Source of the DNA: Caecitellus pseudoparvulus
Lineage: Eukaryota; Protista; Bigyra: Bicosoecida
DNA length: 64,000 bases
Direction: 5' to 3'
Assembly: GCA_965644315.1 (NCBI GenBank)
Contig: CBFFRQ010000094.1
Location: forward strand, 245,443-309,442
Positions 8,494-31,400 of the stretch are shown here, in pieces; within the stretch, counting starts at the first letter, position 1; each line of letters begins with the position of its first letter. The notes beneath the pieces were generated by a model. That model was not told the DNA's origin, searched no databases, and saw only the letters and a list, made by a program, of their open reading frames with translations. The position numbers and the translations under genes are program-made.

Positions 8494-9722
8494 TCAGGGT
8501 GCATTTGAGCCCTCAGCAGCAGCGGCAGCAGCAGCGGTGGTGGGCGTATCGCTTGATGGCTCGGGCTCACCAGCCTCCCCCGGCGCAGGCGACACAGGTC
8601 GAATGGTCCAGTCAATTTCAGGCTCGCTCAGTCCCGCCAGGTGCTCGTTAACCTGCCGGAAGTGGCCGCAGCCGAAGAAGCCTCGAAACGCTGACAGGGG
8701 TGAAGGGTGTGGGCTGCGCAGCACAAGGTGGCGTGACGTGGACACCAGCTTGGCCTTGCTTTGGGCAGGCTTGCCCCACAGCAAGAACGCCACGTCCTTG
8801 CACTGCTTGGACACGTGGCGAATGGCGGCATCTGTGAAGGTCTCCCAGCCTTGCTTGGCGTGGGAATGCGCTGCGCCGGCACGGACGGTGAGCACAGTGT
8901 TCAGAAGCAGCACACCTTGCTGCGCCCAGCAAGTCAAGTCCCCACATCCAGGCGTGTCTGCGTGTGCGGGGGCAGCGGAGGGTGTGGCACTCGGTGACGG
9001 TGTGGCGAGGCAGGCCGGGGCACGCACTGGCCGACCCTGCAGGCAGGGCCGTGGCCGCTTCCTTCACGATGTTGCGGAGGGAGGGGGGCAGGGGCTTGAC
9101 CCCTGCAGGCACAGAAAAGCTCAGGCCGTGGGCTTGCCCGTGGCCGTGGTAGGGGTCTTGCCCCAGCACCACCACTCGCACTCTGTCCAGAGGCGTGTGC
9201 TGGAAGGCTGCAAAGGTGGCCGCTTCTGGGGGGAAGACAGTGCAGGAGGACCGCTGCTTGGCCACAAATGCCATGAGGTCTCGGAAGTACGGCTTGCCGC
9301 ATTCTTCACGGAACAGGGCATGCCAGGACGGGTGCACGGTGGCAGCTGGCGGGCCTGCGGCATTTGAAAGGTCGCCGCTGAGTGAAGGCCGCTCTCCAGC
9401 GCAGCCTAGGCCCACGCACACGTCTCTGCCATATCTGCCTCAAACGCTTCAATACTCAGCGACATCTGCGGCGACGCCTCTGCTCGTCGAGCTGCCTTGG
9501 TGCCTGTGTCTGGAAGGGAGCAGCGTGGCAGGCACTTGTGGCGTGTCTGTCCAGGGCCTGGCCCACGCACCCGTCCCAGCGCCTTGCGCCTCCCCATCTG
9601 AGCCCGAATCGGAGCGCCCCCGCTTCCCTGCGCAGCAGAAACCACCACGTTGCAGTGCTTGGCGTGGGCGCAATCCCAAGCCGGCCCTGCTCACCTTGCC
9701 GTTTGAAGAAGCTGGTGATCAT
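8494..9722 (-). CDS. UNG: Family 1 uracil-DNA glycosylase, 5 exons (9722-9695, 9627-9571, 9509-9420, 9354-9028, 8957-8494), 321 aa
   Basis: Motifs [65 protein letters not shown] and IDW are all present. Four phase-1 GT-AG introns (9694-9628, 9570-9510, 9419-9355, 9027-8958) join the frames, and the summed exon length of 966 nt is divisible by 3. The N-terminus [14 protein letters not shown] has a PIP-box-like motif and a basic NLS-like patch. Confidence 0.93.
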
Positions 9723-10364
9723 GGCGCTTCTCCCCACACCGAACCACAACAGGCAGGCAGGGCCAACGTGCAAGGCATTCGGCGCAAATTGCGGGCTGTG
9801 CATGCTGTGTTTTTTCGCTTCGCTGAGAGCTTTGCGCTTGCGGGCAAGCGGGGTGCTGGGGCCCCCTCAGAGTTGACTGGAGGGGGGCTCCTGCAAGCAC
9901 GGCATTCCACCGCTCCTGATGGCGAGTGACACGCCAGAGACGCCGCGTGGGCTGTGCTGCCCCGCGATCTACGCGCTCCTAGGCCGATCTAGGGGCAGCA
10001 CGCGCCAGAGAATCACCGAAGAGGTGTTTGAATTGCATTGGCCGTCGTGACACGGCCTGCCGGCGCGCTCAAGGGGCACTGGGGCTGGCGTTCCTGTCAC
10101 AGGAGAGATGGCGTGGCGGCCATGTTGCCGGCGGACGGGCAGGGTGTCTTGAGGAACAAGCGCAGGCCCACCCACCACATTTTCAACCTGACCAATCCAG
10201 CCTTCGCATCGATTTCGATGCTGTTGCAGTGATTTCCTTCCCTTACCTCCCTGCTTTGCATTGCAAAGCACGCCTAACAGGACGTTCCCAGGCCAAGTGT
10301 CGCTGTGCGAGCTCAAGCGCACGTGCCGCGCCTTGCCGCGCTCGTCCCATGCTCCCGAGCGACC
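9723..10364. promoter_or_regulatory. Divergent (head-to-head) intergenic region between UNG and the giant secreted protein gene; presumed bidirectional promoter / 5' UTRs
   Basis: The inferred start codons at 9722 (-) and 10365 (+) point away from each other ~640 bp apart. No convincing coding sequence lies between them and no specific motif was identified. Confidence 0.4.
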
Positions 10365-10424
10365 ATGGGTGGCTTGGCAGCTCTCTTGGCAGCATCCCTT
10401 GCTGCCAGCGTGGCTGCTACCGCC
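10365..10424 (+). other. Predicted N-terminal signal peptide of the giant protein
   Basis: MGGLAALLAASLAASVAATA has a hydrophobic Ala/Leu core and ends in A-x-A, followed by a polar/acidic mature sequence (IPSVEFTDG). Confidence 0.75.
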
Positions 10425-13400
10425 ATTCCGTCCGTGGAGTTCACGGACGGCCTTGGCACGGCTGACTTTGAGGGCGGTGAGCATTTCCGCATTCCTCCTC
10501 GTCCGTCTTCGTGAACCCCGAAGACTCCCACGCCTGCCCTGCCATCGCAGACGTTGGACTCCAGTTTACCTTGCGTAATACTGGAACTACCAATGGCTAC
10601 CAGGCGTTCATGGACCTCAGTGCGTGAAGTTTGCCTGACTGTTCTGCAGCTGTGCTGCGCCCACCCCCATGCTGCTGTTGCCTGCCGGGAGGCACCCACG
10701 GCAACTTGTGCAGCCATGCTAGCCTGACTGCCCAGTAAAATATTTTATTGTAGTGTGTCTCGCTGCGTTCTTGTCCCCGGGCCTTCGGAACAGCGGCATG
10801 GCGTGAGGCGGGGCCGTGCCCCGCCGAAACGTTACGTCAGCCATGGCGCACTGCGGCCCCCGTGCTGCCTATCCATCACGGAATTTTGTGTTGTTTTGAT
10901 GTATGAGACTCGTGTGGGTGTGGTTGGTGTGTACATCCCGTCCTTGCGGCGCTGGGCCGCTCGGCAGCTGCAGTGGGAGCGTTTTCGCGTAGTGGGCCCA
11001 CCCCCCGACACGTCCCTCACTCTGCTTGCCTCGTGCGTCACACCCTCACTGCGCGTGCTGCCCGCTCACCGCAGTTGTGCCTGAAGGTGCCACCGATGAA
11101 GTAATTGACGAGGAGCAAGTGACCACCCCCGTTGACGCTCTGGACCTTGGCAGTGGCGATGCGGATTTTGAGGGTGTCACCCGGCCAGCCTTCATGCTCA
11201 CCTTCGAAGAAGATGGCTGCCTCGATCACCCGTTCTTGGTGAACATGGGAACCCCTCTTCCCATTTGCGCCCAAGCTGGTGACCGGCTGTACTCCTGGAC
11301 GGCCCCTCTCAGCTCTCAACCGCCGAACGACGCGGTGCCCTTCGTGCTCACGCCGTCATCTGGCATCCTTCGAGAGGACCTTGACGCCTTTGACATCCGC
11401 ATTCGGTCTGGCTTCAGGGCGCAGACTCCCAGCGCTGACCCGAACACTTACGTGCCCCAGCTGACCCACAGCGAGAACAGCACGTTCTGGCAGCGGGGCA
11501 CCATTGTGCCGCGTCTCGTTGAGATGACCTTCAACCTACCTTCCCAGGGCTCTGTCGTCATCCGTGATTCCGTACGTCCAGCATCCATGTGTTTGAGGTT
11601 ATCTGTGCTCCTCTGGCGTCGCAGCGTGCCTGCGTCGCGGCAGGTCGCGCACCCTTCTTTCCTCACCCCTGCACCCCGCCTCCTTTCACAGGCTGCACGT
11701 TACCTGACTACTCGCTTGTCTGCGCCTGCAGAGTTCCTCATGCCACTTGCAGAGTGGAACTTCACCATGCCGACTGAGTATGAGCTGTTCGGCGCGACGC
11801 CAGTAACAGTGTCAGGGGACTTGGCACCTTTCCTCTCTCTGTCAGCTGCGGAAATCGAGACCAACCTCCGCACCAATCGCTCGTCCTTGATTCAGCTCGT
11901 GAACGTGACCACTGAGGGGATGAGTGGGCGCCCGGAGCTGGTGCTCACCGTGGCCTACTTCCCCCCTCGCTTCAACCAAGTCACTGGCATTGAGCAGGTG
12001 CGGGCGCTGCCCACCGACTTTGGCGGCTCTGGCACCTTCACCATTTCGACAGGCACCCTCATTTACAAGTCTGCCTCTCGAGTGAACGCCACATTCACCA
12101 CTGTCGCGAATATCGCGGAAACGACGACCATCACGCCAGCATTCCAGGCGTACTCGTTCAGCCACAACACGTATACGCCTGCTGGCCCATACGTTGTGAA
12201 CCAAACTCTCCGGACGGGGTTCAGTTTCCACTTCACCCCGCACATGGCCTTCGAGGCAGTGCACGCAGAGTCGTACTACGGGGATGGGTTTTTCATGTCA
12301 CCCGACACCATGAACACCCTCTTCACCTGCTCGGGGCGACTGGGCGCCATCACCAACTACCCCCTCGTCTACGGGCACCACTGGACCATGACACCAGACC
12401 CCGGCTCCAGCAGTGGCACCAGCAATGTCAGCATTGTGCTGGCTTTCAACCTCACCCTGGCAGCCAGCGACGCCCTCTCTGCAGGCGGACTGACCGCGAA
12501 CGAGGTGCCATTCAATGCCAGCAGCTGCAGCGTGCGGTATGACATGACCATCCTACGCAAGTTCGTGTCGAATGACAACCCTATCATTCACAACCAGGAC
12601 CTATACGGTCGAGCATCCATTGCCTTCCGAGCATGCGACATCGTGCCCCTGTCGCCAGCGTACCCCGGTGGATGCATGACACGAACACTGTCCCCTCCCG
12701 ACGGCGGCAGCCCAGACTCCACGCGAACCATTCGCATGGACGTGGGCAGGCCTACGCTGGAAATCTACGCTCTGGACCTGGTGCCATGCAGCCCGCAGCC
12801 GTGCGGCACCGCAGGCCCCGTGGAACTGCTCACCGATACCCTTGTCACATACCGGCTGCGGTACAACCTGCCGTTCACGTCCTTCGACGACTTCTTCATC
12901 ACCCTGTACTTGCCCGATCTGGTGGTGGATGTTGGGGCACTGAACCCTGATGGGCACCTGAACATTCCCATCTCTGGGGCTGGTGCGGCTCCGCCTGGAC
13001 TTGGCAATTTCTCTCGAGGACCGACCGACACCTTCACTGAGCTTTACTCAGCTGACCCCGTGTTCACGTACAGCACCCCTGCCAGCCTCATTGACCAGAC
13101 CATCGAGATCGCATGGCCGTCAGAGGAGAAGGATGTTCCAGGCCGCCCTTCTCAGATTGACTTCCTTTTCACCTTGCAGGTGCAGGTTGCAGTGTTGCCT
13201 GATCTTACCTCAGCAGGGGCGTTTGCCCTCACGACGGAGTCTGGCAACAGCGCGCGGGGCCAGTCCAAGGTTCCCTCCGTCCTGCGAAACCCTGACTTGC
13301 GCATGCTGGCCTTCTTCGTCGATATTTTCGGCAAGGGCTCTGCGCCCGAGGCCAGCATCGTCGAGCCAGTCGTTGGCTCCCCTTGGCAGCCGCTGAGCCC

Positions 13401-16400
13401 AGCCAGCGGCAACTCCTACCGCTTCGACCCCGCAGCCAACTTCTCTGCTGCCGACTTTGATGCGGTGGAAGGACAAGCTCAGGTTGCGCTTGACTTGGAC
13501 GCAGGCGACAATGTCACCGTCGTGGTGGCTGTGCTGAACGAAGGCGGTGTACGTGCTTTCCGCACGGTCATGAACTGTTCCATGAATGTGACTGAGTGGG
13601 CCTCTGACAGCCTGCGTCGCGACGTCATGGCACCTGAGGTGGACATTTCCGACCTGGGCCTAACCAGCACCTTTGCGACAGACAGCGCATCCTCGCCGCT
13701 GTACCCACACCCAAGCGACCACCCAGACAAGGTCACCGTTTCTCAGGTTGGAGGGCTGTGGAACCTGGGCGTTGAGTTTGGCATCATCGGGCCTGAGGAC
13801 GACGATGAGTCCCAGACCCCTGGGACAAACGTGAAGCTTGTCACGTTTGACATTCCAGTGGCTGACGGCGTGCGGCCTTCCGGGTCTGCTCCGTCTGTGG
13901 TGGACGGCACCCTGTCTGTCGGCTTTGGCGCAAGTCTGACCTCGCTTAACTGCAGGCTGAGCGACTACTCCTCTGTTCCACATGGACGCAGCTTTGTAGA
14001 CGAAGAGCCAGAGGATTACCCAATCGTGCCCCTCGTCGCGTATGCGAAAGGCATGAGCTTCGGTGGCGGTGTAGGCGCGCGCAATGTGTCACACCCCTCA
14101 ACCCCTCGAAATTTGCTTACTGATGGAGAGCAAGAGGTTGTTCTCGCAAGGTTTAACCTCCCAGAGGGGCGTGTGGCCAACGTCACTGTCGTGTTTCAAA
14201 TCAAAGGCGCACAGGTGGGCGACCTGCTCGTCGTGGATCCATCCGGCAGCCCGGACCTGGTCCTGCCTCAGCAGATCACATTTGCACCCGGCGGTTCTGC
14301 CTCTTGCATCGTTGTTTCGAGCATTGTGGCCCAGTGCACCTTGCTCGGAGTAACGAACCCCGGCGACAACATTGCCAACGACATGGTCAACGTCAGTCTC
14401 CCAGTGCGCATGCAGGACATGGCGACCACGCTCCATGCAGGGGCAACGTCGTCTGTCGGTGTGCGCATGGTAATTACAGATGACGAGCTGGGGACCCACG
14501 AGCCTGACGAGCAGACTGTGGCTTTCAGCGTAGCACCCCCAGTGCTCTTGGACGACACGGCAGCAACGCTGACTTCTGACGGGCCGCTGGGGACAGGTGA
14601 CAACCTGACCTATGCCATGACGCTTCGTCATGCTGATGAGGATGCTGGGGCTGTGTTTGAAGCGATTAAAGTCAGGATCAACTCCTACGATACGGAGATC
14701 TCTGCGCTCATCGGGGAGCTCAACGTCACCCTGCCTTGCTGCACTTGTACGGTCGGCGCTGCCCTGGTCGCCTCCAGTCCTGACACTGTGGAAGTCACCA
14801 TTTCAAACTGCGACCAGCTGCCTCTGCACAACGACGACATTTTTGTGGAGATGCCATTCCAAATGACGTCTCCTTCAGCTCCGCGTCAGATCTTGTCTGT
14901 TGACTCCACTTGGTCCTGGCTCTCCGGCCCTGCCAACGAGAGTGATGTTGGGGTTTGGGTCGAGAGGCAGCAAGCAGGATTACCAGCCAATCTGACCATT
15001 GAGGCTGGCCCGCTGCTGACCAACTTGACCCTCGCGGGAACTTCGTTGCTGGCAACGTCTGCATCTCAGGTGGTCATTGCCCAGGAAGACATCAGCCCAG
15101 GCGAAGTCCTTCTCATCGACTTTGCTGTCAACAGCCCGGCAAGCAACTGGACTTCAGATGTCGCCATTACTTTTCCTGCTGATTTCATACTCGTTGGCTC
15201 CTGGATCCCCGAGTTTGGTGCGGGGTGGGCAACCTCCTCTGGAGTTGCACTTGGGTCAAACGCAACTGCGGTGACCCTGACTTCCGCAGAGTGGCAGCTT
15301 GGCATTGTAGGTGTGGACCGCACTGGCCTTCCTGGGGAAATTGCAACGACTATCTTCCGGGCTGCTCTCACACTGAATGCTGCGGGAGTAGGGACTCCCA
15401 CCGCAGGAGATTCGTATACATTCGGTGCAAACATCGAGCCGACCTATCTCGACGAACCTCTCGACACCGTCGTGGTGGACGTGGTGGAGCCGTCGTTGGC
15501 TGTCAGCGTGGCAGCTGTGGGTGGCATCACGGGCGTGGAGGGGCAGGACTCCCTGACCTTCGACGTGACCATCGTGAACGACGACGGCGCTGGGAGCACT
15601 GGCCCCGCGTACGATGTGCGGGTGTACGACGACCGCCTGGGCGAGGACGCGCTGTTGACGACGGGGACGTACCGTGTGACATCTGTGAGCTACACGATTG
15701 GTGCGGGTCCGAGTGTGCCAGCGACAGCGGGTCTTGGTCGTGATGGCGGTGCGTTTGTGGAGATCCCGGAGGTGCCCCACGACGAGACGGTGGTTGTGCG
15801 GTATGTGGTGCAGGTGTCTGGTGACGTGGGCGCAGCTGTGGACCTGGCCGTGTCGCCGCATGTGGCGTACCGCAGCCATCCGTTGGAGCGCAGCGGGCTG
15901 TTGTTTGGGGATGCGTACCCGAGCAGTGCGATCCAGAACTACACGGCTGTGAGCGGGAACACGCTGACTGTGGAGGTGGCTGGCTTTGTGCCATCCCTGG
16001 CAACAGTGGACAGCGTGCTGCCTGGCACGAGCAGCGTGCAGATGGCGCCGGGCAACGCCGACATCGCCTTGGGGGAGGTGTTTGTGGTGGACTACACCCT
16101 GGACAGCCCTGTGAGCAACTGGACGTCTGATGCAGGCGTGACGTTTCCGTCTGACTTGGTGGTTGTGGGGGCGTGGGTGAACGAGTTTGGCAGCGGCTGG
16201 CGCAGCGAGGGCGGCGTGGTGCTGGGCACCAACGCCACGACCGTGACGAGCACTGCTGCGACGTGGGCTCTGGGCGAGGTGTCTGTGAATGACGGCAGTG
16301 TGTCACCTGGGGCAGGTGTGACTGCCGCTGTGCTGCGTGTGGCGTTTGTGCTGGACGGCAGTGGTGCTGGGTCGCCGGTGGCTGGCGTGACCCGGAGTGT

Positions 16401-19400
16401 GGTGGGGTCTCTGTCGCCTGGGCTGTTGGACGCGGCACTGCCCAGCATCTCTGTGGACGTGGTGGAGCCGTCGTTGGCTGTCAGCGTGGCAGCTGTGGGC
16501 GGCATCACAGGCGTGGAGGGGCAGGACTCCCTGACCTTCGACGTGACCATCGTGAACGATGACGGCGCTGGGAGCACTGGCCCCGCGTACGATGTGCGGG
16601 TGTACGACGACCGCCTGGGCGAGGACGCGCTGTTGACGACGGGGACGTACCGTGTGACATCTGTGAGCTACACGATTGGTGCGGGTCCGAGTGTGCCAGC
16701 GACAGCGGGTCTTGGTCGTGATGGCGGTGCGTTTGTGGAGATCCCGGAGGTGCCCCACGACGAGACGGTGGTTGTGCGGTATGTGGTGCAGGTGTCTGGT
16801 GACGTGGGCGCAGCTGTGGACCTGGCCGTGTCGCCGCATGTGGCGTACCGGAGCCATCCTTTGGAGCGCAGCGGGCTGTTGTTTGGGGATGCGTACCCGA
16901 GCAGTGCGATCCAGAACTACACGGCTGTGAGCGGGAACACGCTGACTGTGGAGGTAACAGGTGTACGAGTTGGTGTTTCTTCCCAAGATACCTCTCTTTC
17001 AGGGACAGCTTCTGGTCAACTGAATGGTGGTTGGGAGGATCTTAACATTGGTGAAGTATTGGTCTTCCAGTATGAGGTAGACAGCCCTGTGAGCAACTGG
17101 ACAGCAGTTGCAGAAACAACATTTAGCAATGATTTCACTCTCCTGGCAGCTTGGATTTCCTATCTTGGCTCTGGTTGGGTTTCTGGGAATGGACTTGCGT
17201 TTGGGTCAAATGCGACGTCGACAAGCCAGACAAACGCTGAGTGGGACTTCGGACTAACAGCTGTCAATGATGGGACTCTGTCTCCAGGAACAAGTGTAAC
17301 TGAAACCATCATGACATTGGCCCTTGTTCTGGATGCGTCTTCTGCCGGTTCCCCATCCGCAGCAGATACAGTTGAAGTTCGGGCACGTTTTCCTGGAGGC
17401 CTTCGCGATGGTGGTCAGCCAAGGATCCGCTATAATGTCCTTGAACCGTCGTTGGCTGTCAGCGTGGCAGCTGTGGGCGGCATCACAGGCGTGGAGGGGC
17501 AGGACTCCCTGACCTTCGACGTGACCATCGTGAACGACGACGGCGCTGGGAGCACTGGCCCCGCGTACGATGTGCGGGTGTACGACGACCGCCTGGGCGA
17601 GGACGCGCTGTTGACGACGGGGACGTACCGTGTGACATCTGTGAGCTACACGATTGGTGCGGGTCCGAGTGTGCCAGCGACAGCGGGTCTTGGTCGTGAT
17701 GGCGGTGCGTTTGTGGAGATCCCGGAGGTGCCCCATGACGAGACGGTGGTTGTGCGGTATGTGGTGCAGGTGTCTGGTGATGTGGACGCAGCTGTGGACC
17801 TGGCCGTGTCGCCGCATGTGGCGTACCGCAGCCATCCGTTGGAGCGCAGCGGGCTGTTGTTTGGGGATGCGTACCCGAGCAGTGCGATCCAGAACTACAC
17901 GGCTGTGAGCGGGAACACGCTGACTGTGGAGGTGGCTGGCTTTGTGCCATCCCTGGCAACAGTGGACAGCGTGCTGCCTGGCACGAGCAGCGTGCAGATG
18001 GCGCCGGGCAACGCCGACATCGCCTTGGGGGAGGTGTTTGTGGTGGACTACACCCTGGACAGCCCTGTGAGCAACTGGACGTCTGATGCGGGTGTGACGT
18101 TTCCGTCTGACTTGGTGGTTGTGGGGGCGTGGGTGAACGAGTTTGGCAGCGGCTGGCGCAGCGAGGGCGGCGTGGTGCTGGGCACCAACGCCACGACCGT
18201 GACGAGCACTGCTGCGACGTGGGCTCTGGGCGAGGTGTCTGTGAATGACGGCAGCGTGTCACCTGGGGCAGGTGTGACTGCCACTGTGCTGCGTGTGGCG
18301 TTTGTGCTGGACGGCAGTGGTGCTGGGTCGCCGGTGGCTGGCGTGACCCGGAGTGTGGTGGGGTCTCTGTCGCCTGGGCTGTTGGACGCGGCATTGCCCA
18401 GCATCTCTGTGGACGTGGTGGAGCCGTCGTTGGCTGTCAGCGTGGCAGCTGTGGGCGGCATCACGGGCGTGGAGGGGCAGGACTCCCTGACCTTCGACGT
18501 GACCATCGTGAACGACGACGGCGCTGGGAGCACTGGCCCCGCGTACGATGTGCGGGTGTACGACGACCGCCTGGGCGAGGACGCGCTGTTGACGACGGGG
18601 ACGTACCGTGTGACATCTGTGAGCTACACGATTGGTGCGGGTCCGAGTGTGCCAGCGACAGCGGGTCTTGGCCGTGATGGCGGTGCGTTTGTGGAGATCC
18701 CGGAGGTGCCCCATGACGAGACGGTGGTTGTGCGGTATGTGGTGCAGGTGTCTGGTGATGTGGACGCAGCTGTGGACCTGGCCGTGTCGCCGCATGTGGC
18801 GTACCGGAGCCATCCGTTGGAGCGCAGCGGGCTGTTGTTTGGGGATGCGTACCCGAGCAGTGCGATCCAGAACTACACGGCTGTGAGCGGGAACACGCTG
18901 ACTGTGGAGGTGGCTGGCTTTGTGCCATCCCTGGCAACAGTGGACAGCGTGCTGCCTGGCACGAGCAGCGTGCAGATGGCGCCGGGCAACGCCGACATCG
19001 CCTTGGGGGAGGTGTTTGTGGTGGACTACACCCTGGACAGCCCTGTGAGCAACTGGACGTCTGATGCGGGTGTGACGTTTCCGTCTGACTTGGTGGTTGT
19101 GGGGGCGTGGGTGAACGAGTTTGGCAGCGGCTGGCGCAGCGAGGGCGGCGTGGTGCTGGGCACCAACGCCACGACCGTGACGAGCACTGCTGCGACGTGG
19201 GCTCTGGGCGAGGTGTCTGTGAATGACGGCAGCGTGTCACCTGGGGCAGGTGTGACTGCCACTGTGCTGCGTGTGGCGTTTGTGCTGGACGGCAGTGGTG
19301 CTGGGTCGCCGGTGGCTGGCGTGACCCGGAGTGTGGTGGGGTCTCTGTCGCCTGGGCTGTTGGACGCGGCACTGCCCAGCATCTCTGTGGACGTGGTGGA

Positions 19401-22400
19401 GCCGTCGTTGGCTGTCAGCGTGGCAGCTGTGGGCGGCATCACAGGCGTGGAAGGGCAGGACTCCCTGACCTTCGACGTGACCATCGTGAACGACGACGGC
19501 GCTGGGAGCACTGGCCCCGCGTACGATGTGCGGGTGTACGACGACCGCCTGGGCGAGGACGCGCTGTTGACGACGGGGACGTACCGTGTGACATCTGTGA
19601 GCTACACGATTGGTGCGGGTCCGAGTGTGCCAGCGACAGCGGGTCTTGGCCGTGATGGCGGTGCGTTTGTGGAGATCCCGGAGGTGCCCCACGACGAGAC
19701 GGTGGTTGTGCGGTATGTGGTGCAGGTGTCTGGTGATGTGGGCGCAGCTGTGGACCTGGCCGTGTCGCCGCATGTGGCGTACCGGAGCCATCCTTTGGAG
19801 CGCAGCGGGCTGTTGTTTGGGGATGCGTACCCGAGCAGTGCGATCCAGAACTACACGGCTGTGAGCGGGAACACGCTGACTGTGGAGGTGGCTGGCTTTG
19901 TGCCATCCCTGGCAACAGTGGACAGCGTGCTGCCTGGCACGAGCAGCGTGCAGATGGCGCCGGGCAACGCCGACATCGCCTTGGGGGAGGTGTTTGTGGT
20001 GGACTACACCCTGGACAGCCCTGTGAGCAACTGGACGTCTGATGCGGGTGTGACGTTTCCGTCTGACTTGGTGGTTGTGGGGGCGTGGGTGAACGAGTTT
20101 GGCAGCGGCTGGCGCAGCGAGGGCGGCGTGGTGCTGGGCACCAACGCCACGACTGTGACGAGCACTGCTGCGACGTGGGCTCTGGGCGAGGTGTCTGTGA
20201 ATGACGGCAGCGTGTCACCTGGGGCAGGTGTGACTGCCACTGTGCTGCGTGTGGCGTTTGTGCTGGACGGCAGTGGTGCTGGGTCGCCGGTGGCTGGCGT
20301 GACCCGGAGTGTGGTGGGGTCTCTGTCGCCTGGGCTGTTGGACGCGGCATTGCCCAGCATCTCTGTGGACGTGGTGGAGCCGTCGTTGGCTGTCAGCGTG
20401 GCAGCTGTGGGCGGCATCACGGGCGTGGAGGGGCAGGACTCCCTGACCTTCGACGTGACCATCGTGAACGACGACGGCGCTGGGAGCACTGGCCCCGCGT
20501 ACGATGTGCGGGTGTACGACGACCGCCTGGGCGAGGACGCGCTGTTGACGACGGGGACGTACCGTGTGACATCTGTGAGCTACACGATTGGTGCGGGTCC
20601 GAGTGTGCCAGCGACAGCGGGTCTCGGTCGCGATGGCGGTGCGTTTGTGGAGATCCCGGAGGTGCCCCATGACGAGACGGTGGTTGTGCGGTATGTGGTG
20701 CAGGTGTCTGGTGATGTGGGCGCAGCTGTGGACCTGGCCGTGTCGCCGCATGTGGCGTACCGGAGCCATCCTTTGGAGCGCAGCGGGCTGTTGTTTGGGG
20801 ATGCGTACCCGAGCAGTGCGATCCAGAACTACACGGCTGTGAGCGGGAACACGCTGACTGTGGAGGTGGCTGGCTTTGTGCCATCCCTGGCAACAGTGGA
20901 CAGCGTGCTGCCTGGCACGAGCAGCGTGCAGATGGCGCCGGGCAACGCCGACATCGCCTTGGGGGAGGTGTTTGTGGTGGACTACACCCTGGACAGCCCT
21001 GTGAGCAACTGGACGTCTGATGCGGGCGTGACGTTTCCGTCTGACTTGGTGGTTGTGGGGGCGTGGGTGAACGAGTTTGGCAGCGGCTGGCGCAGCGAGG
21101 GCGGCGTGGTGCTGGGCACCAACGCCACGACCGTGACGAGCACTGCTGCGACGTGGGCTCTGGGCGAGGTGTCTGTGAATGACGGCAGCGTGTCACCTGG
21201 GGCAGGTGTGACTGCCGCTGTGCTGCGTGTGGCGTTTGTGCTGGACGGCAGTGGTGCTGGGTCGCCGGTGGCTGGCGTGACCCGGAGTGTGGTGGGGTCT
21301 CTGTCGCCTGGGCTGTTGGACGCGGCACTGCCCAGCATCTCTGTGGACGTGGTGGAGCCATCGTTGGCTGTCAGCGTGGCAGCTGTGGGCGGCATCACAG
21401 GCGTGGAGGGGCAGGACTCCCTGACCTTCGACGTGACCATCGTGAACGATGACGGCGCTGGGAGCACTGGCCCCGCGTACGATGTGCGGGTGTACGACGA
21501 CCGCCTGGGCGAGGACGCGCTGTTGACGACGGGGACGTACCGTGTGACATCTGTGAGCTACACGATTGGTGCGGGTCCGAGTGTGCCAGCGACAGCGGGT
21601 CTTGGCCGTGATGGCGGTGCGTTTGTGGAGATCCCGGAGGTGCCCCACGACGAGACGGTGGTTGTGCGGTATGTGGTGCAGGTGTCTGGTGACGTGAGCG
21701 CAGCTGTGGACCTGGCCGTGTCGCCGCATGTGGCGTACCGCAGCCATCCGTTGGATCGCAGCGGGCTGTTGTTTGGGGATGCGTACCCGAGCAGTGCGAT
21801 CCAGAACTACACGGCTGTGAGCGGGAACACGCTGACTGTGGAGGTGGCTGGCTTTGCGCCGTCCCTGGCAACAGTGGACAGCGTGCTGCCTGGCACGAGC
21901 AGCGTGCAGATGGCGCCGGGCAACGCCGACATCGCCTTGGGGGAGGTGTTTGTGGTGGACTACACCCTGGACAGCCCTGTGAGCAACTGGACGTCTGATG
22001 CGGGCGTGACGTTTCCGTCTGACTTGGTGGTTGTGGGGGCGTGGGTGAACGAGTTTGGCAGCGGCTGGCGCAGCGAGGGCGGCGTGGTGCTGGGCACCAA
22101 CGCCACGACCGTGACGAGCACTGCTGCGACGTGGGCTCTGGGTGAGGTGTCTGTGAATGACGGCAGTGTGTCACCTGGGGCAGGTGTGACTGCCACTGTG
22201 CTGCGTGTGGCGTTCGTGCTGGACGGCAGTGGTGCTGGGTCGCCGGTGGCCGGCGTGACCCGGAGTGTGGTGGGGTCTCTGTCACCGGGGCTGTTGGACG
22301 CGGCACTGCCCAGCATCTCTGTGGACGTGGTGGAGCCGTCGTTGGCTGTCAGCGTGGCAGCTGTGGGCGGCATCACGGGCGTGGAGGGGCAGGACTCCCT

Positions 22401-25400
22401 GACCTTCGACGTGACCATCGTGAACGACGACGGCGCTGGGAGCACTGGCCCCGCGTACGATGTGCGGGTGTACGACGACCGCCTGGGCGAGGACGCGCTG
22501 TTGACGACGGGGACGTACCGTGTGACATCTGTGAGCTACACGATTGGTGCGGGTCCGAGTGTGCCAGCGACAGCGGGTCTTGGCCGTGATGGCGGTGCGT
22601 TTGTGGAGATCCCGGAGGTGCCCCACGACGAGACGGTGGTTGTGCGGTATGTGGTGCAGGTGTCTGGTGATGTTGAAGCCAGTGCATCTTTGATCGTGTT
22701 GCCGCATGTGGCGTACCGCAGCCATCCGTTGGAGCGCAGCGGGCTGTTGTTTGGGGATGCGTACCCGAGCAGTGCGATCCAGAACTACACGGCCGGGAGC
22801 TCTAATCTGGAAACTGTTGTTGTGTCGTCGCCTTCGTTTCAAGCTTCAATCACTGATGTTGATGACGAAACTTCATTGTCACCGACTGAGGTCGTCCATG
22901 GGTCTTCCATCGAGTACACAATCACTCTTGTTGTGCCCCAGACTAACATGACTGGAGCTGTTTTTGACTTTGACCTTGGACTTGGTGATGGTTTACTGTC
23001 CGCAGCAGAAGTTGTAAGTGTGACTGCAGACCCCGCTCTGGGATCCACTTATGGACCCTTTGTCGATTTTGCCGACGAGGGCTTTGTGCACACGACTTTG
23101 AGCTCCTCCAGCGTCTCGCTCGACTTTGGCACTATTTTCAACACCGATGTTGTGCCAGGGACTACTGAGCTGGTCGTTGTGCGCATTAATGCCTTCGTGT
23201 CTAACTTGACGGCTCCCGTGGACGGGAGTTCTGGCGGCGCACTTCCACGAATCACATCTAGTCTTGGCTTTGTGGACGGGTCGACAGCTACCTTGACTCT
23301 TCGTCTGCCCAACCTTGGCATGGTAGCTTTGGAACCTGGAGTCGAGGTTGATCGGGGCGATCTGGTTCCCATGAATGTGACAGTGTTCCACTCAGCAGTG
23401 TCTTCTTCGACTGCATTTAACTTGACAGTCTTTGATTCCCTGTTGACGGAGGCTCCCAGTGGGCTCACCGCCTACTTGTTTAGCTCCCTTGTTGCGGATG
23501 ACTCTCCAGTCGATTCGGTTGCACTCTATGATGTTGACAACACCGGGCAACTTCTCTTCCTCGATCAGGTTCAGCTGGTCCATGCTGCTGGTCTCAACTA
23601 CACCGTTCGCATTGATAATGCTGTCTCTGCGAATGCCGTTATCGTTTCAAAGCTCTCAGCAAGCTACTTGTCACACCCCAATCCAAGGTATGGCAGTGCA
23701 AGGAAGTTTTTCATCACGGAAGGGGATCTGATTCAACCTGACATTGCTATTGACACCCCAACTTTTGTCGGCATGATTTTGGAGCCTGACAGTCAGAGCA
23801 CCAGTGGAGGTGCACTGATTGGTCAGACCGTTCACATGCAGGTATTGGTCCAGCTTCCTGAAGTTATCACGTCAGATGCCGCCCTGAACGTTTCTTTTGT
23901 CACGTCCGACATGTTTGCTATTGTTTCGTTGGACAACTTGTACTCCAACCGCCCTGCCCTGCTCGTGACAGACGCCGCACCTTCTTTCCAAGACATTCTT
24001 GCTATCCCAACTGCGGTGGCACTGTTCCCTGATTCGAGTGTCAAGATTGAGCTCGGGAACCTAACAAACCTCGACTTTGATGATGACGTCCCCGAGCGCC
24101 TGTACCTAAACATGACCGTCTTTGTCCAGCCTTCCCTGCCAAATGTTCGGGGGCGAGAGCTCACAGCAGTTGCAACATTCACTGCATTGAACCTTGACTC
24201 CGAAGATGTGCAGAGCAATGCGTCCATGATCGTCTTCGAACCGGAAATGACGCTGACAGCTGCGCCGGCTACTGTGACGGCAGATTCGGGGGACATTGTA
24301 GCCTTTACAGTGACTTCCGCAGCTCTCGGGCTTCCTATGCATGGTACAGCGTTTAATGTGGAGCTTTATGACAATGATCTTTCTGCAGGCAAGTACTCCG
24401 TAGTTACAGTTCACGTCGATGGTGCGAAAGTTTACGAATCCGACCCTGGTACAACGCCTGGAGACGGATTCGGAAGTCTCGGCCTCGGGCCGGGTGGAAA
24501 CCTCTCGCCAAACTTCGTGGCCCGAATGCCCCATGTACCTGCCGGCAGCAATAGCCAAGTGACATACACCCTGATGTTGAACACGTCTATCGAGGCGGGC
24601 GAATCTTTTGCCCCAGGACTTGAGGTGCGGTTTACCAGCGTCAACGGAAGCGACTTCTCAGTTCCAAGAAACTACAGCTCAGTGCAAGCATCTCCTTCAT
24701 CCATTGAAGGCTCTCTTCCATCTATCACTGTGCGCGCCGAGAGCGATGAGGCAACGTACGCCCCTGACACGTACAGCCTGGGCAGCACCGTCGTGCACGT
24801 GGTGCGAGTGACGGTTGCGGAGGGCACGATGCGGGGTGCGAGCATGACGCTGACGCTGTCTGACACGACTCGGTTTGCGTTTGTGGGTGTGTCCAGCATC
24901 ACTGCGCCTGGCAGTGTGACGAGCAGCCATGGCGACTGGGACAGCGTGGTGGCGCCGGGCCATGTGTCGAGCGTGGCTGGTACGTCCCTGACCGTGGACA
25001 TGGGCACGGTGGTGAACCGTGACACGTCCAACGCCGTGTCTGAGGTGGTGGAGATGCGGGTGGTGACGGTGGCCCTTGTGAATGTGGGGCACGTGGCCGG
25101 CGTGGTGACGGGCGTGAGCGTGGAGGTGGTGAGCAGCGAGGTGGGCGCTGGTGTCGTGACGGACAGCACGAGCGTGACGGCTGAGGAGCCGGATGTGGCG
25201 TACACTGTGTCGCTGCCTGCTGGCGGTCCGTACGACGCGGGTGACGAGTTGGTGTTCACGGTGAGCGTGAGTGGTCTGGCTACGACAGGCGATGACAGCC
25301 CCGCGTACGGCGTGGTGTTGACGGACGGCGAGTTGTTGTCAGGCAGGTACTCTGTGGTGCAGGTGAACTCCAGCGTGGACGGCGTGTTGTTCACGGCTGA

Positions 25401-28400
25401 TGCGGGTGACAGCGACTCTGGCTTTGGGAGCTTGGGTCGTGGTCCTGGCGGGTCCAGCGTGCCTGCTCTGGTGGGCAGCGTGGGCCGTGTGAATGTGAGC
25501 GAGGTGGTGGTGTTCACGTACGCGGTGAAGCTGGACACGAGCGTGGAGTCCGAGGAGGTGTTTGAGCCTGACGTGACAGTTGCGTGGAGCAGCCACCCCG
25601 GCAGCGTGCACGGTGTGGCGCGGAACTACACGCGTGACATTGGTGGCGCTGGCAAGCCGGACGTGGTGATTGATTCGCCGGTGTACAGCGTGAGCGTGGT
25701 GCCGGATGGCTTCGGCGACTCCCCGAGCGAGGTGGTGGTGGGCCAGGAGGTGATCGTGACGGCAGTGGTGGAGGTGATCGAGGGCACGACGAGTGCTCCC
25801 ATCGTGACGCTGACGCACACTGACGGCACGATGCTGCAGTGGGTGTCGGTGCTGTCCATCGAGGCGTCGTCGCCGAATGTGACGAGCTCCCACGGTGCAT
25901 TCAGCAGCGTGCTGTCGGGGCACACGAGCGTGGTGCCTGGGTCCAGCGTGACTGTGGACTTGGGCACGCTTGAGAATGTGAACGTGGACAACGGCGTGGC
26001 CGAGACGGTGACGGTGCGTGTGCTGGCTGTGGTGCCTGACGCGGGTGCAGTGCGTGGTGCGACGGTGGACGTGGACACGGCGCTGACGGGCGGTGCGTTG
26101 GTGGGGACGTTCACGAGCAGCACGACGTTGACGCTGGCTGAGGGTGAGCTGAATACGAGCCCTGTGGTGGTGCCGCTGTCTGTGACGGATGTGGATGCGG
26201 GCGACTTTGTGACGACGAGCATCACGCTGACGCACGATGGGGCATCGGATGCACCCGTGTACAACGTGACGGTGCGCGATGTGGAGCTGGCGAGCGGAGA
26301 GTACACGGTTGTGGGCGTGTCGGTGGACGGTGTGAGTGTGCCGTACAGCGCTGCGCCTGGTGGTGAGATCGTGGAGGTGGCGAGTCTGGCACACGGCGCG
26401 AGCGTGGTTGTGAACGTGACGCTGCGCATGGACGTGAGCATTGAGACGGGTCACTTTGTGTCCCCGGAGCTGGTTGTGGAGTACACGTCGCACCCTGGCG
26501 GGTCGGGTCGCCCGGCGACGTTTGCGGTGCTGCCCCGGCAGGTGTTCGCTGTGGACGGCGCTGTGATCGGCAGTTCGACTGTGCTGGACGGGTCCAGTGC
26601 GGATGGTGCTGGTTTGGTGGTGGGCACTGTGGTGCAGGTGGTGACCCAGGTGGCGTTGCCTGAAGGCACCAGCCGCGACAGTCTGCTGGTGTTGGAGGTG
26701 ACGGGTGTGACGGACGCCTTCAGCACGTGGAGCGTGGACTCTGTCGTGGACGCGTCTGGCAGCGGTGCCCTGAGCAGCAGCTGTGTGGGGAGCTTCGGCG
26801 CCCTGGCCAGCTACGGCGGCATCGTGCGCAACGCGTCCCATGTGCTGTTGCCCATGTGCGACGTGACGAACACGGACACCGACAACGGAGTGGCTGAGCC
26901 GTTCGTGGTGACGATGTCTGCCCGCGTGTTGGATGTGGTGTCTGTGCAGCAGGGCGCCTCTGTGAACATCACGGCATCATTCACGTCAGTGTCTGATGGT
27001 CCCATTTCTGTGTTGTCTGGCAACTTCACCGTGCGCGAGGCAGGGTTGGAGGCGGCCAGTGTGACGCCCAAGGCTGTGGCGGGTGTGGACGGCGGCGACA
27101 GCGTGGTTGTGACTGCGGTGGTGGACCACACGGGCAGCTCTGACGCGCCTGCGTACAGCATCATCGTGCGGGACAACGGCACGGCAGTGTACCGCGAGGA
27201 CGACGGGTCGGTGGTGGCTGCCGCTGCAGCCCCGCAGTACATCTTGACGGAGGTGCGGGTGAACGGTGTGGTGCAGGGCGGGCCCTTGACCCACGGCAGC
27301 GACGGCGTGGTGGTTGTGATTGCCTCCTTGCCTGCTGGCGCAACTGCGACGGTGCAGGCGACGTTCACGGTGCAGGGCGTGGTGGAGCCGAGCGTGCGGC
27401 TGGTGCCGTGGCTGAGTCTGGACTGGAGCAGTCACCCTGAGGGGAGCGCCGCGCGGAATGCGAGTGTTGTGGGCGGGGAGGGTGTGAGCGCCGCGCTGGT
27501 GGACACGGCGACACCTGCGGGGCAGGTGGGTGTGGTGTCACCCAGTCCTGGTCTGACGGCCAGCATTGGTGAGCTGGTGACGTACACGCTGAACGTGAGT
27601 GTGGTGGAGGGGACGCTGCGGTCCAGTGCGCTGCGCGTGGAGGTGCTGCCAGTTGTGACTGCGGTTGCGACGGAGGTGGTGCAGTTTGGTGCGCCGGCGC
27701 TGAGCAGCGTGCGCAGCTACCGTGTGACGGCGGGTGGCGTGGAGAGCGCTGCGCCGTTGGTGTCGTCTGATGTTGCGGGTGTGGGCAGCACGTTCAGCGG
27801 ATTTGTGGGTCTGGAGAGCGCGTTGGTGAGTGAGCAAGGCTTCACGCTGGGCACTGGGACGGTGGTGAACGGGCACCTGTCTGACGGCGGCGCTGATGGG
27901 CTGGTGGAGGAGATGGAGCTGGTGTACACGGTGCGCGTGCGGGACGTGGACGTTGGCTCCGATGCGATTATGCGTGGTGACACGTTCGAGAGCCGGGTGG
28001 AGTTGACGTCTGCGGGCGTGGAGAGCGGTGAGGTGGTGCTGGTGAGCCCCACGGTGACTGTGATTGAGCCCAGCTTGGCGGCGTTGGTGGTGAGCCCCAC
28101 CGCGGTGTCTGGCGTGGACGGCAGCGATGTGATTGTGTTCGAGGTGCTCGTGAGCCATGACGGCGCCTCGGACGCTGACGCGAACAACGTGGAGGTCGTG
28201 GACACGGCCCTGGTGGGCGGTGTGCCGGGGGCCCCCTACGAGCTGCTGGCCGTGTACGTGGACGGTGTGCTGGTGTACGAGGCCGGCGTGGACGACGACA
28301 GCGCTGTGCTGTCTGACGGTGCGCTGGCGACGTTGCCAGTGCTGGGTCTGGGCAGCACTGCGAATGTGACGTACGTGGTGAGCGTGAGCCCGGTGGCGGA

Positions 28401-31400
28401 GGTGGGCAGCACCCTGACGCCAGATGTGCAGGCAGGGTACACGTCGGTGCCGGACCGCAGCGTGGCGCGGAACTACAGCGTGGTGCCTGGTGTGGGCGCT
28501 GTGGTGTCTGTGGTGGACACGGCAGAGGTGGACTTCAACGCGAGCATGGTTGCGGGTGCGGACGCGCCTGCCGGGAGTGGCGGTGTGACGCCTGTGACTG
28601 TGGGCGGTGAGGTGTCGTTTGAGTTGACGTTCGAGGTGCCTGAGGGGCAGATGAGCGGCGTTGACTTGCTTGTGAACTTCAGCGACCCTGTGCTGGTGCA
28701 GTGGATCAGCAGTGATCCGTCTGTGGTGGTGAGCATCACGCCCAGCTCGCCTGCTGTGACATCCAACTGCAGTGGGGGCCTGGCCGGCGCGGCCAGTGCT
28801 GCTGTGCTGCATGGTGATGGCGCCAGTGCCAGCGTGTCCCTGTGCACGCTCAGCAACACCGACGACGACAACGACGTGGTGGAGACGGTGACGGTGCGGC
28901 TGACGGGTGTGGTGCAGGATGTGCCATCTGCGGTGCAGGGCGCCTCGTTCATCCTGACGGCCAACGTGACCAGTGCTGAGGGGACGCCTGTGAACATGGT
29001 GGCTGGTCCGGGTGTGATTGCGGAGCCACTGCTGGAGGCGTCCCTGTCCAGCGGTCCGGTGGGCGGCAGCGTCGTGGACGCGAACGACACGCTGACGTTT
29101 GTGTTTGTGGTGGGTGCAGCCCCTGGCAGCGATGCGACGGCGTACAATGTGCGGGTGCAGGACACTGCGTTCGCGACTCAGGACGATGGTCTGGGCGGCG
29201 GTCCGGAGGGCAGCTCCAGCGGCGAGCCTCTGTACGAGGTGAGTGGCGTGACTGTGGACGGTGTGGCGGTGCCGCACGACAGCGTGGGCTTTGCTGCGGA
29301 CGGGACGCTGGTGCTGTTGGGGGAGCTGGCAGTGTCCACTGGGGACATTGTGATCGAGGTGAACGTGACGCTGCGCACGGACATCGAGAGCGGGACAGGC
29401 GTGTCTCCGACGTTTGAGGTGACGTGGAGCAGTGCAGTGGACGGGAGCGGGGCACGGAACCGGACGCTGGTGGGGGGTGCCCTGTCAGCGCCGTCCGTGT
29501 CTGTGGCCCGTCCATCTGTCACTGTGCGCGCCGAGAGCGACGAGGCGACGTACGCCCCTGACACGTACAGCCTGGGCAGCACCGTCGTGCACGTGGTGCG
29601 AGTGACGGTTGCGGAGGGCACGATGCGGGGTGCGAGCATGACGCTGACGCTGTCTGACACGACTCGGTTTGCGTTTGTGGGTGTGTCCAGCATCACTGCG
29701 CCTGGCAGTGTGACGAGCAGCCATGGCGACTGGGACAGCGTGGTGGCGCCGGGCCATGTGTCGAGCGTGGCTGGTACGTCCCTGACCGTGGACATGGGCA
29801 CGGTGGTGAACCGTGACACGTCCAACGCCGTGCCTGAGGTGGTGGAGATGCGGGTGGTGACGGTGGCCCTTGTGAATGTGGGGCACGTGGCCGGCGTGGT
29901 GACGGGCGTGAGCGTGGAGGTGGTGAGCAGCGAGGTGGGCGCTGGTGTCGTGACGGACAGCACGAGCGTGACGGCTGAGGAGCCGGATGTGGCGTACACT
30001 GTGTCGCTGCCTGCTGGCGGTCCGTACGACGCGGGTGACGAGTTGGTGTTCACGGTGAGCGTGAGTGGTCTGGCTACGACAGGCGACGACAGCCCCGCGT
30101 ACGGCGTGGTGTTGACGGACGGCGAGTTGTTGTCAGGCAGGTACTCTGTGGTGCAGGTGAACTCCAGCGTGGACGGCGTGTTGTTCACGGCTGATGCGGG
30201 TGACAGCGACTCTGGCTTTGGGAGCTTGGGTCGTGGTCCTGGCGGGTCCAGCGTGCCTGCTCTGGTGGGCAGCGTGGGCCGTGTGAATGTGAGCGAGGTG
30301 GTGGTGTTCACGTACGCGGTGAAGCTGGACACGAGCGTGGAGTCCGAGGAGGTGTTTGAGCCTGACGTGACAGTTGCGTGGAGCAGCCACCCCGGCAGCG
30401 TGCACGGCGTGGCGCGGAACTACACGCGTGACATTGGTGGCGCTGGCAAGCCGGATGTGGTGATTGATTCGCCGGTGTACAGCGTGAGCGTGGTGCCTGA
30501 TGGCTTCGGCGACTCCCCGAGCGAGGTGGTGGTGGGCCAGGAGGTGATCGTGACGGCAGTGGTGGAGGTGATCGAGGGCACGACGAGTGCTCCCATCGTG
30601 ACGCTGACGCACACTGACGGCACGATGCTGCAGTGGGTGTCGGTGCTGTCCATCGAGGCGTCGTCGCCGAATGTGACGAGCTCCCACGGTGCATTCAGCA
30701 GCGTGCTGTCGGGGCACACGAGCGTGGTGCCTGGGTCCAGCGTGACTGTGGACTTGGGCACGCTTGAGAATGTGAACGTGGACAACGGCGTGGCCGAGAC
30801 GGTGACGGTGCGTGTGCTGGCTGTGGTGCCTGACGCGGGTGCAGTGCGTGGTGCGACGGTGGACGTGGACACGGCGCTGACGGGCGGTGCGTTGGTGGGG
30901 ACGTTCACGAGCAGCACGACGTTGACGCTGGCTGAGGGTGAGCTGAACACGAGCCCTGTGGTGGTGCCGCTGTCTGTGACGGATGTGGATGCGGGCGACA
31001 TTGTGACGACGAGCATCACGCTGACGCACGATGGGGCATCGGATGCACCCGTGTACAACGTGACGGTGCGCGATGTGGAGCTGGCGAGCGGGGAGTACAC
31101 GGTGGTGGGCGTGTCGGTGGATGGTGTGAGTGTGCCGTACAGCGCTGCGCCTGGTGGTGAGATCGTGGAGGTGGCGAGTCTGGCGCACGGCGCGAGCGTG
31201 GTTGTGAACGTGACGCTGCGCATGGACGTGAGCATTGAGACGGGTCACTTTGTGTCCCCCGAGCTGGTTGTGGAGTACACGTCGCACCCTGGCGGGTCGG
31301 GTCGCCGGGCGACGTTTGCGGTGCTGCCCCGGCAGGTGTTCGCTGTGGACGGCGCTGTGATCGGCAGTTCGGCTGTGCTGGACGGGTCCAGTGCGGATGG

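Follow-up and report, generated by a model that had tools for sequence, protein, structure and literature searches.

The locus described here raises the question of whether parts of a bacterial surface protein have become a eukaryotic gene, and which parts. The window, a stretch of 64,000 nucleotides from the bicosoecid Caecitellus pseudoparvulus (assembly GCA_965644315.1, contig CBFFRQ010000094.1, positions 245,443 to 309,442), contains one very long gene on the plus strand; positions given below are those of the window. A preliminary description had likened the stretch at 10551-15480 to giant bacterial surface proteins annotated with DUF11, the conserved repeat domain TIGR01451, and the isopeptide-forming fimbrial D2 domain TIGR04226, and had suggested transfer from bacteria to a eukaryote followed by intron gain. 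On our best overall explanation, the window probably holds at least 17,600 codons from the 5' side of a gene in a GC-rich marine protist (the GC content of the window is 60-73%), and the product would be a giant protein that is secreted or sits on the cell surface. The gene is a cross-link-free eukaryotic variant of a bacterial stalk module, located behind an uncharacterised head.

The stalk is composed of two types of beta-sandwich domain, here called B and A. Domain hidden Markov models (HMMs) located 52 B and 51 A domains in the window, alternating from about position 14533 to the end of the contig; the stalk comprises more than 100 domains, or about 51 B+A double modules. A non-repetitive N-terminal head followed by such a tandem stalk is the layout of a fibrillar adhesin. 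The first B+A module (14533-15480; B at residues 948-1080 of exon 4, A at residues 1105-1289) is diverged, and matches the downstream repeats with 29-45% identity (E about 1e-22). It is followed by array A (15481-22332), which contains seven B+A units of 978 bp (326 residues) with 98-100% identical DNA except for a diverged A segment. A unique stretch with three diverged B+A modules (22333-25182) separates array A from array B (25183-64000). Array B consists of at least 8.1 copies of a 4,794-bp (1,598-residue) super-repeat, each with five B+A modules and again with 98-100% identical DNA, and it runs off the contig. One A domain within the homogenised array A (16956-17445) is strongly diverged; there the identity at a lag of 978 falls to about 0.5-0.6. 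The encoded protein is acidic and rich in Val, Ser, Gly, Ala, and Thr, and only 0.23% of its residues are Lys. Exon translations were concatenated only for the counts of residues and sequons. The exons were searched one by one, so that the first domain, which spans exons 1-3, was covered in separate pieces.

A phmmer search with one super-repeat as query had significant matches to two bacterial proteins: P0010 (E = 3.5e-21), encoded on a contig with ordinary bacterial genes, and P0011 (E = 5.8e-11), a protein from a Roseomonas metagenome-assembled genome (MAG) named 'isopeptide-forming domain-containing fimbrial protein'. In BLASTP, the super-repeat and P0010 were colinear over 1,126 columns (E = 8e-30). 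Each of the two proteins contains five to eight matched stretches of TIGR04226 and likewise five to eight of TIGR01451, and PF01345, the Pfam model of DUF11 (CLIPPER), matches them with E-values of 1.7e-25 and 1.9e-37. The alignments place B opposite DUF11/TIGR01451 and A opposite TIGR04226, the A domain being colinear with the TIGR04226 regions of both P0010 and P0011. HMMs made from P0010 alone detected all six domains of the unique stretch at 22333-25182 (independent E-values from 2.7e-4 to 3.5e-12).

Profiles built from eukaryotic units only (21 units from eight contigs) and from bacterial units only were compared with hhalign. The two profiles matched with a probability of 99.7% and an E-value of 1.8e-25 over 277 columns, which establishes homology to the PF01345 family at the profile level; the identity to the bacterial sequences is only about 22-25%. 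When 201 bacterial genomes of a single phylum were scanned with the eukaryote-only profile, six of them contained whole double modules (best E = 1.5e-17). When P0010 was used as query among genome contigs, the only match was to SdrD_B in an Acidimicrobiia MAG, and this match served only to choose the phylum that was sampled. Short motifs are common to the stalk and to the bacterial proteins that combine DUF11 and TIGR04226, namely VEP.L, DAGD, A.DV..D, and YTS.P, as well as IGE.V.Y, PEGT, and GT..N.D.D. On these sequence comparisons, homology links the A/B alternation to the bacterial double module of TIGR01451/DUF11 (CLIPPER) and TIGR04226 (RrgB-D2 type).

The curated family models register little of this homology. 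In a six-frame scan of the whole genome, PF01345 reached 24.8-25.0 bits (24.8-25.2 bits over all scans; cut-off 24.6) in only one B domain per super-repeat, at 26179-26442 and every 4,794 bp thereafter; with more flanking sequence the same match drops to 23.4 bits. When short pieces were searched against Pfam at E ≤ 10, neither another B domain nor anything within 10551-15480 matched PF01345, and array A and the head had no match to any family. TIGR01451 had no match in the gene and a single one in the genome, with 19.2 bits on contig C89 (cut-off 24 bits), and TIGR04226 matched neither the gene nor the rest of the genome at E ≤ 1 (cut-off 30 bits). Long pieces searched against Pfam and NCBIfam also returned no DUF11, TIGR01451, or TIGR04226, and none of the Pfam scans of the gene returned Cna_B (PF05738). 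The preliminary description had named PF01345, TIGR01451, and TIGR04226 as the models to scan with; only PF01345 exceeds its cut-off, by 0.2-0.6 bit, in one B domain per super-repeat and outside 10551-15480. The resemblance proposed there therefore holds as homology of the A/B alternation in phmmer, BLASTP, and hhalign, and not as a direct match to either TIGR model. Eukaryotic members of these domain families exist, yet they escape the curated HMMs. DUF11/CLIPPER is described as a widespread stalk domain of bacteria and archaea, and its earlier eukaryotic matches were put down to contamination (Costa et al., 10.1101/2025.04.25.650565).

Some matches to other families were rejected. An Egh16-like virulence factor (Pfam) and a cobalt-precorrin-7 methyltransferase (NCBIfam), both with E about 1e-9 at 16492-22491, are artefacts, and no single stretch passes by itself. 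The same applies to a holin match on the long pieces. All three arose because weak matches were summed over near-identical repeats.

An AlphaFold2 model of one B+A unit (26152-27042), calculated from a 29-row alignment, shows two beta-sandwich domains with a mean predicted local distance difference test score (pLDDT) of 89.6 and a predicted template-modelling score of 0.83. The top ranks of a Foldseek search with this model were two-domain bacterial adhesins (the C-terminal domains of AgI/II, PrgB, Cna, and FnBPA) together with integrin legs. Using an exhaustive aligner, the A domain was superposed on EbpB (Z = 12.8), RrgB (Z = 11.9), and also SpaD; on the CLIPPER crystal structure 9IFR, 122 residues aligned to the 123-residue chain (Z = 11.3, 2.5 Å). 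In the model, the A domain is thus a beta-sandwich of the pilin-type CnaA/CLIPPER-like class. The B domain resembles generic MG, cohesin, and integrin-hybrid sandwiches (Z about 10-11). Searched against the PDB, the profile of the unit gave weak but consistent matches to pilins, adhesins, and 9IFR (E from 0.004 to 0.09), and a phmmer search of PDB sequences with one B domain gave chance matches only.

The fold has been kept without the residues that form the isopeptide bond. In the bacterial units, K10, D46, and N110 of the B domain and K168, E187, and N295 of the A domain are invariant, in agreement with the Lys-Asn-Asp triad described for CLIPPER (10.1101/2025.04.25.650565). We inspected the corresponding columns in 57 B and 51 A domains, which are the distinct domains from the whole genome and not the count for the window. 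None of them has a Lys at the donor column, and a Lys within two columns occurs in two B domains and one A domain. The acceptor column contains an Asn in one B domain and in no A domain. The pair of Lys and Asn, with the Lys allowed within two columns, is absent from all 57 B and all 51 A domains. Of all the triad residues, only the Asp of B survives, in 54 of the 57 domains. The term 'isopeptide-forming' does not fit this protein, since no domain examined keeps the pair.

N-glycosylation sequons and Cys pairs are found in place of the cross-links. The super-repeat at 25183-29976 contains 22 N-X-S/T sequons versus 7.5 ± 2.5 expected from shuffled sequences, an enrichment of about three-fold, and 58% of its Asn residues sit in such sequons. 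The head (exon 3 and 11692-14532) contains 17 sequons versus 7.6 ± 2.5 in shuffles. A co-occurring pair of Cys residues is found in ten to fourteen of the 51 A domains, including two of the five A domains of the super-repeat, at columns where the bacterial units have a Gly or a gap.

The structure of the 5' end shows in which kind of genome the gene resides. Exon 1 (10365-10476), delimited from the sequence and RNA contigs, begins with the ATG at 10365 and encodes a hydrophobic N-terminus; a signal peptide is probable from its Ala/Leu-rich stretch, judged without a predictor. It is followed by intron 1 (10477-10550, 74 nt), exon 2 (10551-10619, 23 codons, with an FTLRNTG motif that runs on into exon 3), intron 2 (10620-11074, 455 nt), exon 3 (11075-11571), and intron 3 (11572-11691, 120 nt, in frame and free of stop codons). 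All three introns have GT..AG borders. Marine metatranscriptome contigs from run X1 skip all three introns, and those from run X2 skip the first two; the X1 contig that skips intron 3 has 255 letters on its shorter side. Contigs of both runs begin at 10211-10216 and join 10476 to 10551, which gives a 5' untranslated region of at least 150 nt. Three marine metatranscriptome runs, each from a different study, supplied contigs that cover the 5' part with 95-99% identity to the window, and the introns are retained in a DNA-like run of a related strain. Because the three introns are spliced in metatranscriptome contigs, the locus is a real, expressed eukaryotic gene. The clustering of the introns in the first ~1.3 kb, reported earlier from the sequence, was confirmed; all lie within 1.33 kb of the ATG.

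From 11692 to the end of the contig there is one open frame, apart from a single-base deletion at 58236. Here a G run has five letters where the copy 4,794 bp upstream has six, and the giant open reading frame (ORF) changes frame as a result. Across the 700 bp compared, the two copies do not differ at any other position, and the missing G is probably a homopolymer error of the assembly. The last base of the window (64000) is the end of the contig (C94), inside array B.

Bacterial-type repeat domains on a contig that stops inside an array could suggest bacterial contamination or an assembly chimera. The removal of three spliceosomal introns in RNA already refutes this explanation, and we give it next to no weight. 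At least ten further contigs carry related genes, most of which are fused to TSP1 and a multi-pass anchor; the Lys and Asn pair is missing from all eukaryotic domains examined, unlike in the bacterial units; and a UDG-family gene and a phosphodiesterase-like region are present on the same contig, near the gene. The spliced introns and the spread of the family over many contigs of the genome bear out the earlier judgement that the locus is not a contaminant. The uracil-DNA glycosylase (UDG) family gene adjoins on the minus strand (8494-9421). Two overlapping ORFs, each in its own frame, share its domain between them (profile positions 3-63 and 44-140), and therefore an intron or a frameshift is expected near 8908-8928. 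This neighbour had been described as an intron-containing UNG; the UDG-family gene and the split of its domain over two frames were found, and its introns are putative.

The head presents a different picture from the stalk. It is about 1,100 residues long (about 1,140 with exon 2), extends from exon 2 to about position 14532, and contains exon 3 and the first ~950 codons of exon 4 (11692-14532), which are rich in N-glycosylation sequons. The ordered series of motifs from which the preliminary description started is real: every motif was found, in the order given, in the translation of 11077-16500 in the frame of the long ORF, and the alternation of IGE..PEG and EP.L..DAGD..AYDV comes after it. 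A bacterial character of this N-terminal region, which makes up most of 10551-15480, was not recovered by phmmer, Pfam, or hhalign. Residues 1-1200 of exon 4, searched with phmmer against 1.84 billion representatives, matched six short metagenome fragments and no bacterial protein; the fragments that were traced sit on eukaryotic-looking contigs. Pfam searches with the head in 200-residue pieces at E ≤ 10 gave nothing, and NCBIfam likewise gave no match. In hhalign, similarity to the A/B unit was not significant before residue 950 of exon 4. The only bacterial-type part of 10551-15480 is its last ~950 nt, the diverged first module.

These results speak against the possibility that the whole N-terminal region was copied colinearly from the front of a giant bacterial DUF11/D2 protein, the full gene having been transferred and the introns gained later. 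Neither P0010 nor P0011 surfaced in the exhaustive phmmer search with the head, which was not compared directly with either, and the family databases are blank for the head even at the permissive threshold. In favour of a full transfer, the language-model features of the head are nearest to bacterial DUF11 clusters (score 0.91, 142-157 features shared), below the level of recognition and a lead only. Residues 595-942 are colinear with the whole unit in hhalign at a non-significant E-value of 0.045 (probability 1.2%), and some motifs of the head look like the beginning of a B domain. We consider transfer of the complete gene very improbable. All three introns lie in the orphan head, outside the bacterial-type part, and therefore do not demonstrate that transferred DNA gained introns. 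The data are explained no less well if the transferred modules were fused to eukaryotic exons.

Among the sequences searched, the only relatives of the head are one paralogue and fragments on metagenome contigs from uncultured organisms. The head is colinear with that of the paralogue on contig C53 (27-32% identical), and also with metagenome contigs L011 and L012. An AlphaFold2 model of the head, from an 11-sequence alignment, was unusable (pLDDT 32.9). Downstream of its head-like region, L012 encodes B and A domains that are also free of the Lys and the Asn. A rhamnosidase gene on L012 (1787-4273, minus strand) contains nine in-frame stops, all of them TAG, and five of these align with Gln of the L011 orthologue. 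The L012 organism probably reads TAG as a sense codon, judging from this alignment, and for this reason L012 is assigned to a different organism.

Stalks of A and B domains are encoded on at least ten other contigs of the genome (C53, C54, C95, C55, C44, C164, C89, C78, C184, and C197), and C40 has a single A-type match only. The paralogues within the genome are 25-39% identical. The C53 paralogue ends (C53:383158-386754) in TSP1, followed by some nine hydrophobic helices and a long acidic tail. Most of the relatives with a 3' end have this ending, namely those on C89, C95, C44, C54, C78, C184, and C197. The membrane module is without a Pfam family. Three of these loci are 3' fragments at contig edges that lack a 5' end and carry A/B modules with the anchor (C78:1-10000, C184:34000-41986, and C197:44500-52669). 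One of them might be the missing end of the window gene; none has DNA in common with one super-repeat, one array A unit, or the unique B/A stretch. At the protein level the fragments on C184 and C197 are almost the same, and they may be haplotigs or recent duplicates.

To place the eukaryotic modules among the bacterial ones, a maximum likelihood tree of 45 units was calculated. The 22 eukaryotic units (one of them from L012) were separated from the 23 bacterial units with an ultrafast bootstrap of 97 and a Shimodaira-Hasegawa-like approximate likelihood-ratio support of 90. Under midpoint rooting, the eukaryotic group falls among several bacterial lineages; the root itself was not inferred. 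A single acquisition from a prokaryote by a eukaryote is the most economical reading, and one that we moderately favour, because the eukaryotic units form one group in the tree, DUF11 is broad in bacteria and archaea, and there are no accepted eukaryotic members. Colossin of Dictyostelium provides a precedent. Transfer from bacteria is plausible, with no donor or root found.

The same data could reflect a module that is homologous to the bacterial one without being a lineage-specific transfer: an old eukaryotic family, or one that arrived through another eukaryote or a virus, with a patchy appearance created by poor sampling of protists and by the misses of the HMMs. The divergence of the family within this genome, where paralogues as little as 25% identical are spread over many contigs, is consistent with such an age, as is the low identity to the bacterial sequences. 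The occurrence on L012, in an organism that appears to use TAG as sense, makes the family older than this species. Surveys built on Pfam and NCBIfam would miss eukaryotic members, as these databases miss almost all such domains. Against an old family stand the single eukaryotic group in the tree and its position among several bacterial lineages under midpoint rooting, the published account in which DUF11/CLIPPER is widely distributed among bacteria and archaea and lacks any credible member from eukaryotes (10.1101/2025.04.25.650565), and the exhaustive phmmer search with the head, which returned no named eukaryotic protein. On balance we regard an old eukaryotic family, or an indirect arrival, as unlikely. 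A protein search with the eukaryote-only unit profile was blank over 8,000 low-complexity candidates, as was one with the 950-residue unique B/A stretch; neither outcome carries much weight.

Transfer thus remains the preferred reading, and in its fullest form it has, in our estimate, an even chance of being right. In this form, the family would be the first verified eukaryotic clade of the stalk module that combines CLIPPER (DUF11) with an RrgB-D2-type domain. The ancestor of several marine protists would have acquired the module once from a prokaryote. The module would then have lost its isopeptide cross-links, with N-glycans and disulfides of the secretory pathway perhaps taking their place. 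It would have been joined to an orphan head (in the paralogues also to TSP1 and a multi-pass anchor) and multiplied into a family of surface fibres, the longest exceeding 17,000 residues.

Several points weigh against this account. The bacterial sample in the tree is narrow, comprising two metagenome proteins and one phylum, and the tree is unrooted. Composition differs between the two groups and could help the eukaryotic and bacterial units to separate. The word-based searches of the eukaryotic range were swamped by low-complexity candidates, and retrieved no named eukaryotic relatives. Two of the three curated models, TIGR01451 and TIGR04226, miss the gene, and PF01345 is only marginal. The 3' end of the gene is missing, the contig stopping inside a near-identical 4.8-kb tandem array, and an anchor for the window gene is suggested only by its paralogues. 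The signal peptide, the glycosylation, and the disulfides are predictions from the sequence only. To call the head adhesive is an analogy.

With transfer as the starting point, the following course of events can be proposed. A eukaryotic ancestor most likely received the A/B module in a single event from a prokaryote. The module would then have been joined to eukaryotic parts (the head, TSP1, and the membrane anchor) and amplified. The stalk may act as a long rod that holds the head away from the cell, with a length of about 0.4-0.5 µm if 4-5 nm per domain is assumed. Glycans and disulfides may stabilise the rod in place of isopeptide bonds. By analogy with the paralogues that reach their 3' end, anchoring would be by TSP1, a multi-pass membrane module, and an acidic cytoplasmic tail.

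The closest comparison is with the fibrillar adhesins and fimbrial proteins of bacteria. P0010, P0011, and the 9IFR adhesin from Acinetobacter silvestris share with the stalk a unit of two domains and about 300-320 residues, with colinearity across several such units, and bacterial fibrillar adhesins have the same fold class and the same long tandem stalk behind an N-terminal head (10.1101/2025.04.25.650565). In contrast to these adhesins, the eukaryotic domains have the Lys and Asn of both triads replaced, contain almost no Lys, are enriched in sequons, and in some A domains have a Cys pair. The window gene also differs in having spliceosomal introns and in being barely detected or missed by the curated HMMs. 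Its paralogues end in TSP1 and a multi-pass anchor, whereas the bacterial adhesins have a sortase signal or an OmpA-like anchor.

The shafts of Gram-positive pili offer a second comparison. The A domain superposes on the RrgB D2/D3 region, EbpB, EbpC, SpaD, and BcpA over 126-136 residues (Z from 11 to 13, root mean square deviation 2.5-2.9 Å). However, the identity is 8-13%, the isopeptide residues are absent, a sortase motif was neither sought nor seen, and there is no logic of pilus polymerisation: a single chain of more than 100 domains takes the place of a polymer of subunits.

Two eukaryotic systems are similar in architecture. Colossin A of Dictyostelium is a giant slug protein of Cna_B repeats and a candidate for transfer from bacteria (PMC3188802). 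Like the protein encoded here, it is a giant extracellular protein of a eukaryote in which a beta-sandwich of the bacterial pilin/adhesin type has been massively amplified. Unlike colossin A, the window gene has no Cna_B match, its unit is the two-domain module of DUF11 and D2, it belongs to a different eukaryotic lineage, and it has an orphan head and paralogues with a multi-pass anchor. The second system, by analogy only, is that of the giant adhesion-type receptors of eukaryotes: the paralogues on C53, C89, C95, C44, and C54 likewise combine a head, a stalk, TSP1, about nine hydrophobic helices, and an acidic tail. They differ from these receptors in a membrane module without a Pfam family and in stalk domains of bacterial type.

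A 2025 survey of intramolecular isopeptide domains asked whether these occur in eukaryotes, and dismissed all eukaryotic matches as contamination (Costa et al., 10.1101/2025.04.25.650565). Beside the Dictyostelium colossin, the family described here is a second, independent case of a giant extracellular protein of a protist made from bacterial adhesin parts. The head, entirely uncharacterised, is the part most likely to bind something. The stalk amounts to a natural experiment: the fold has been kept, both cross-link residues have been lost in every domain examined, and glycosylation sites have been gained. With this comparison, the share of the isopeptide bond in the mechanical and proteolytic stability of such stalks becomes testable.

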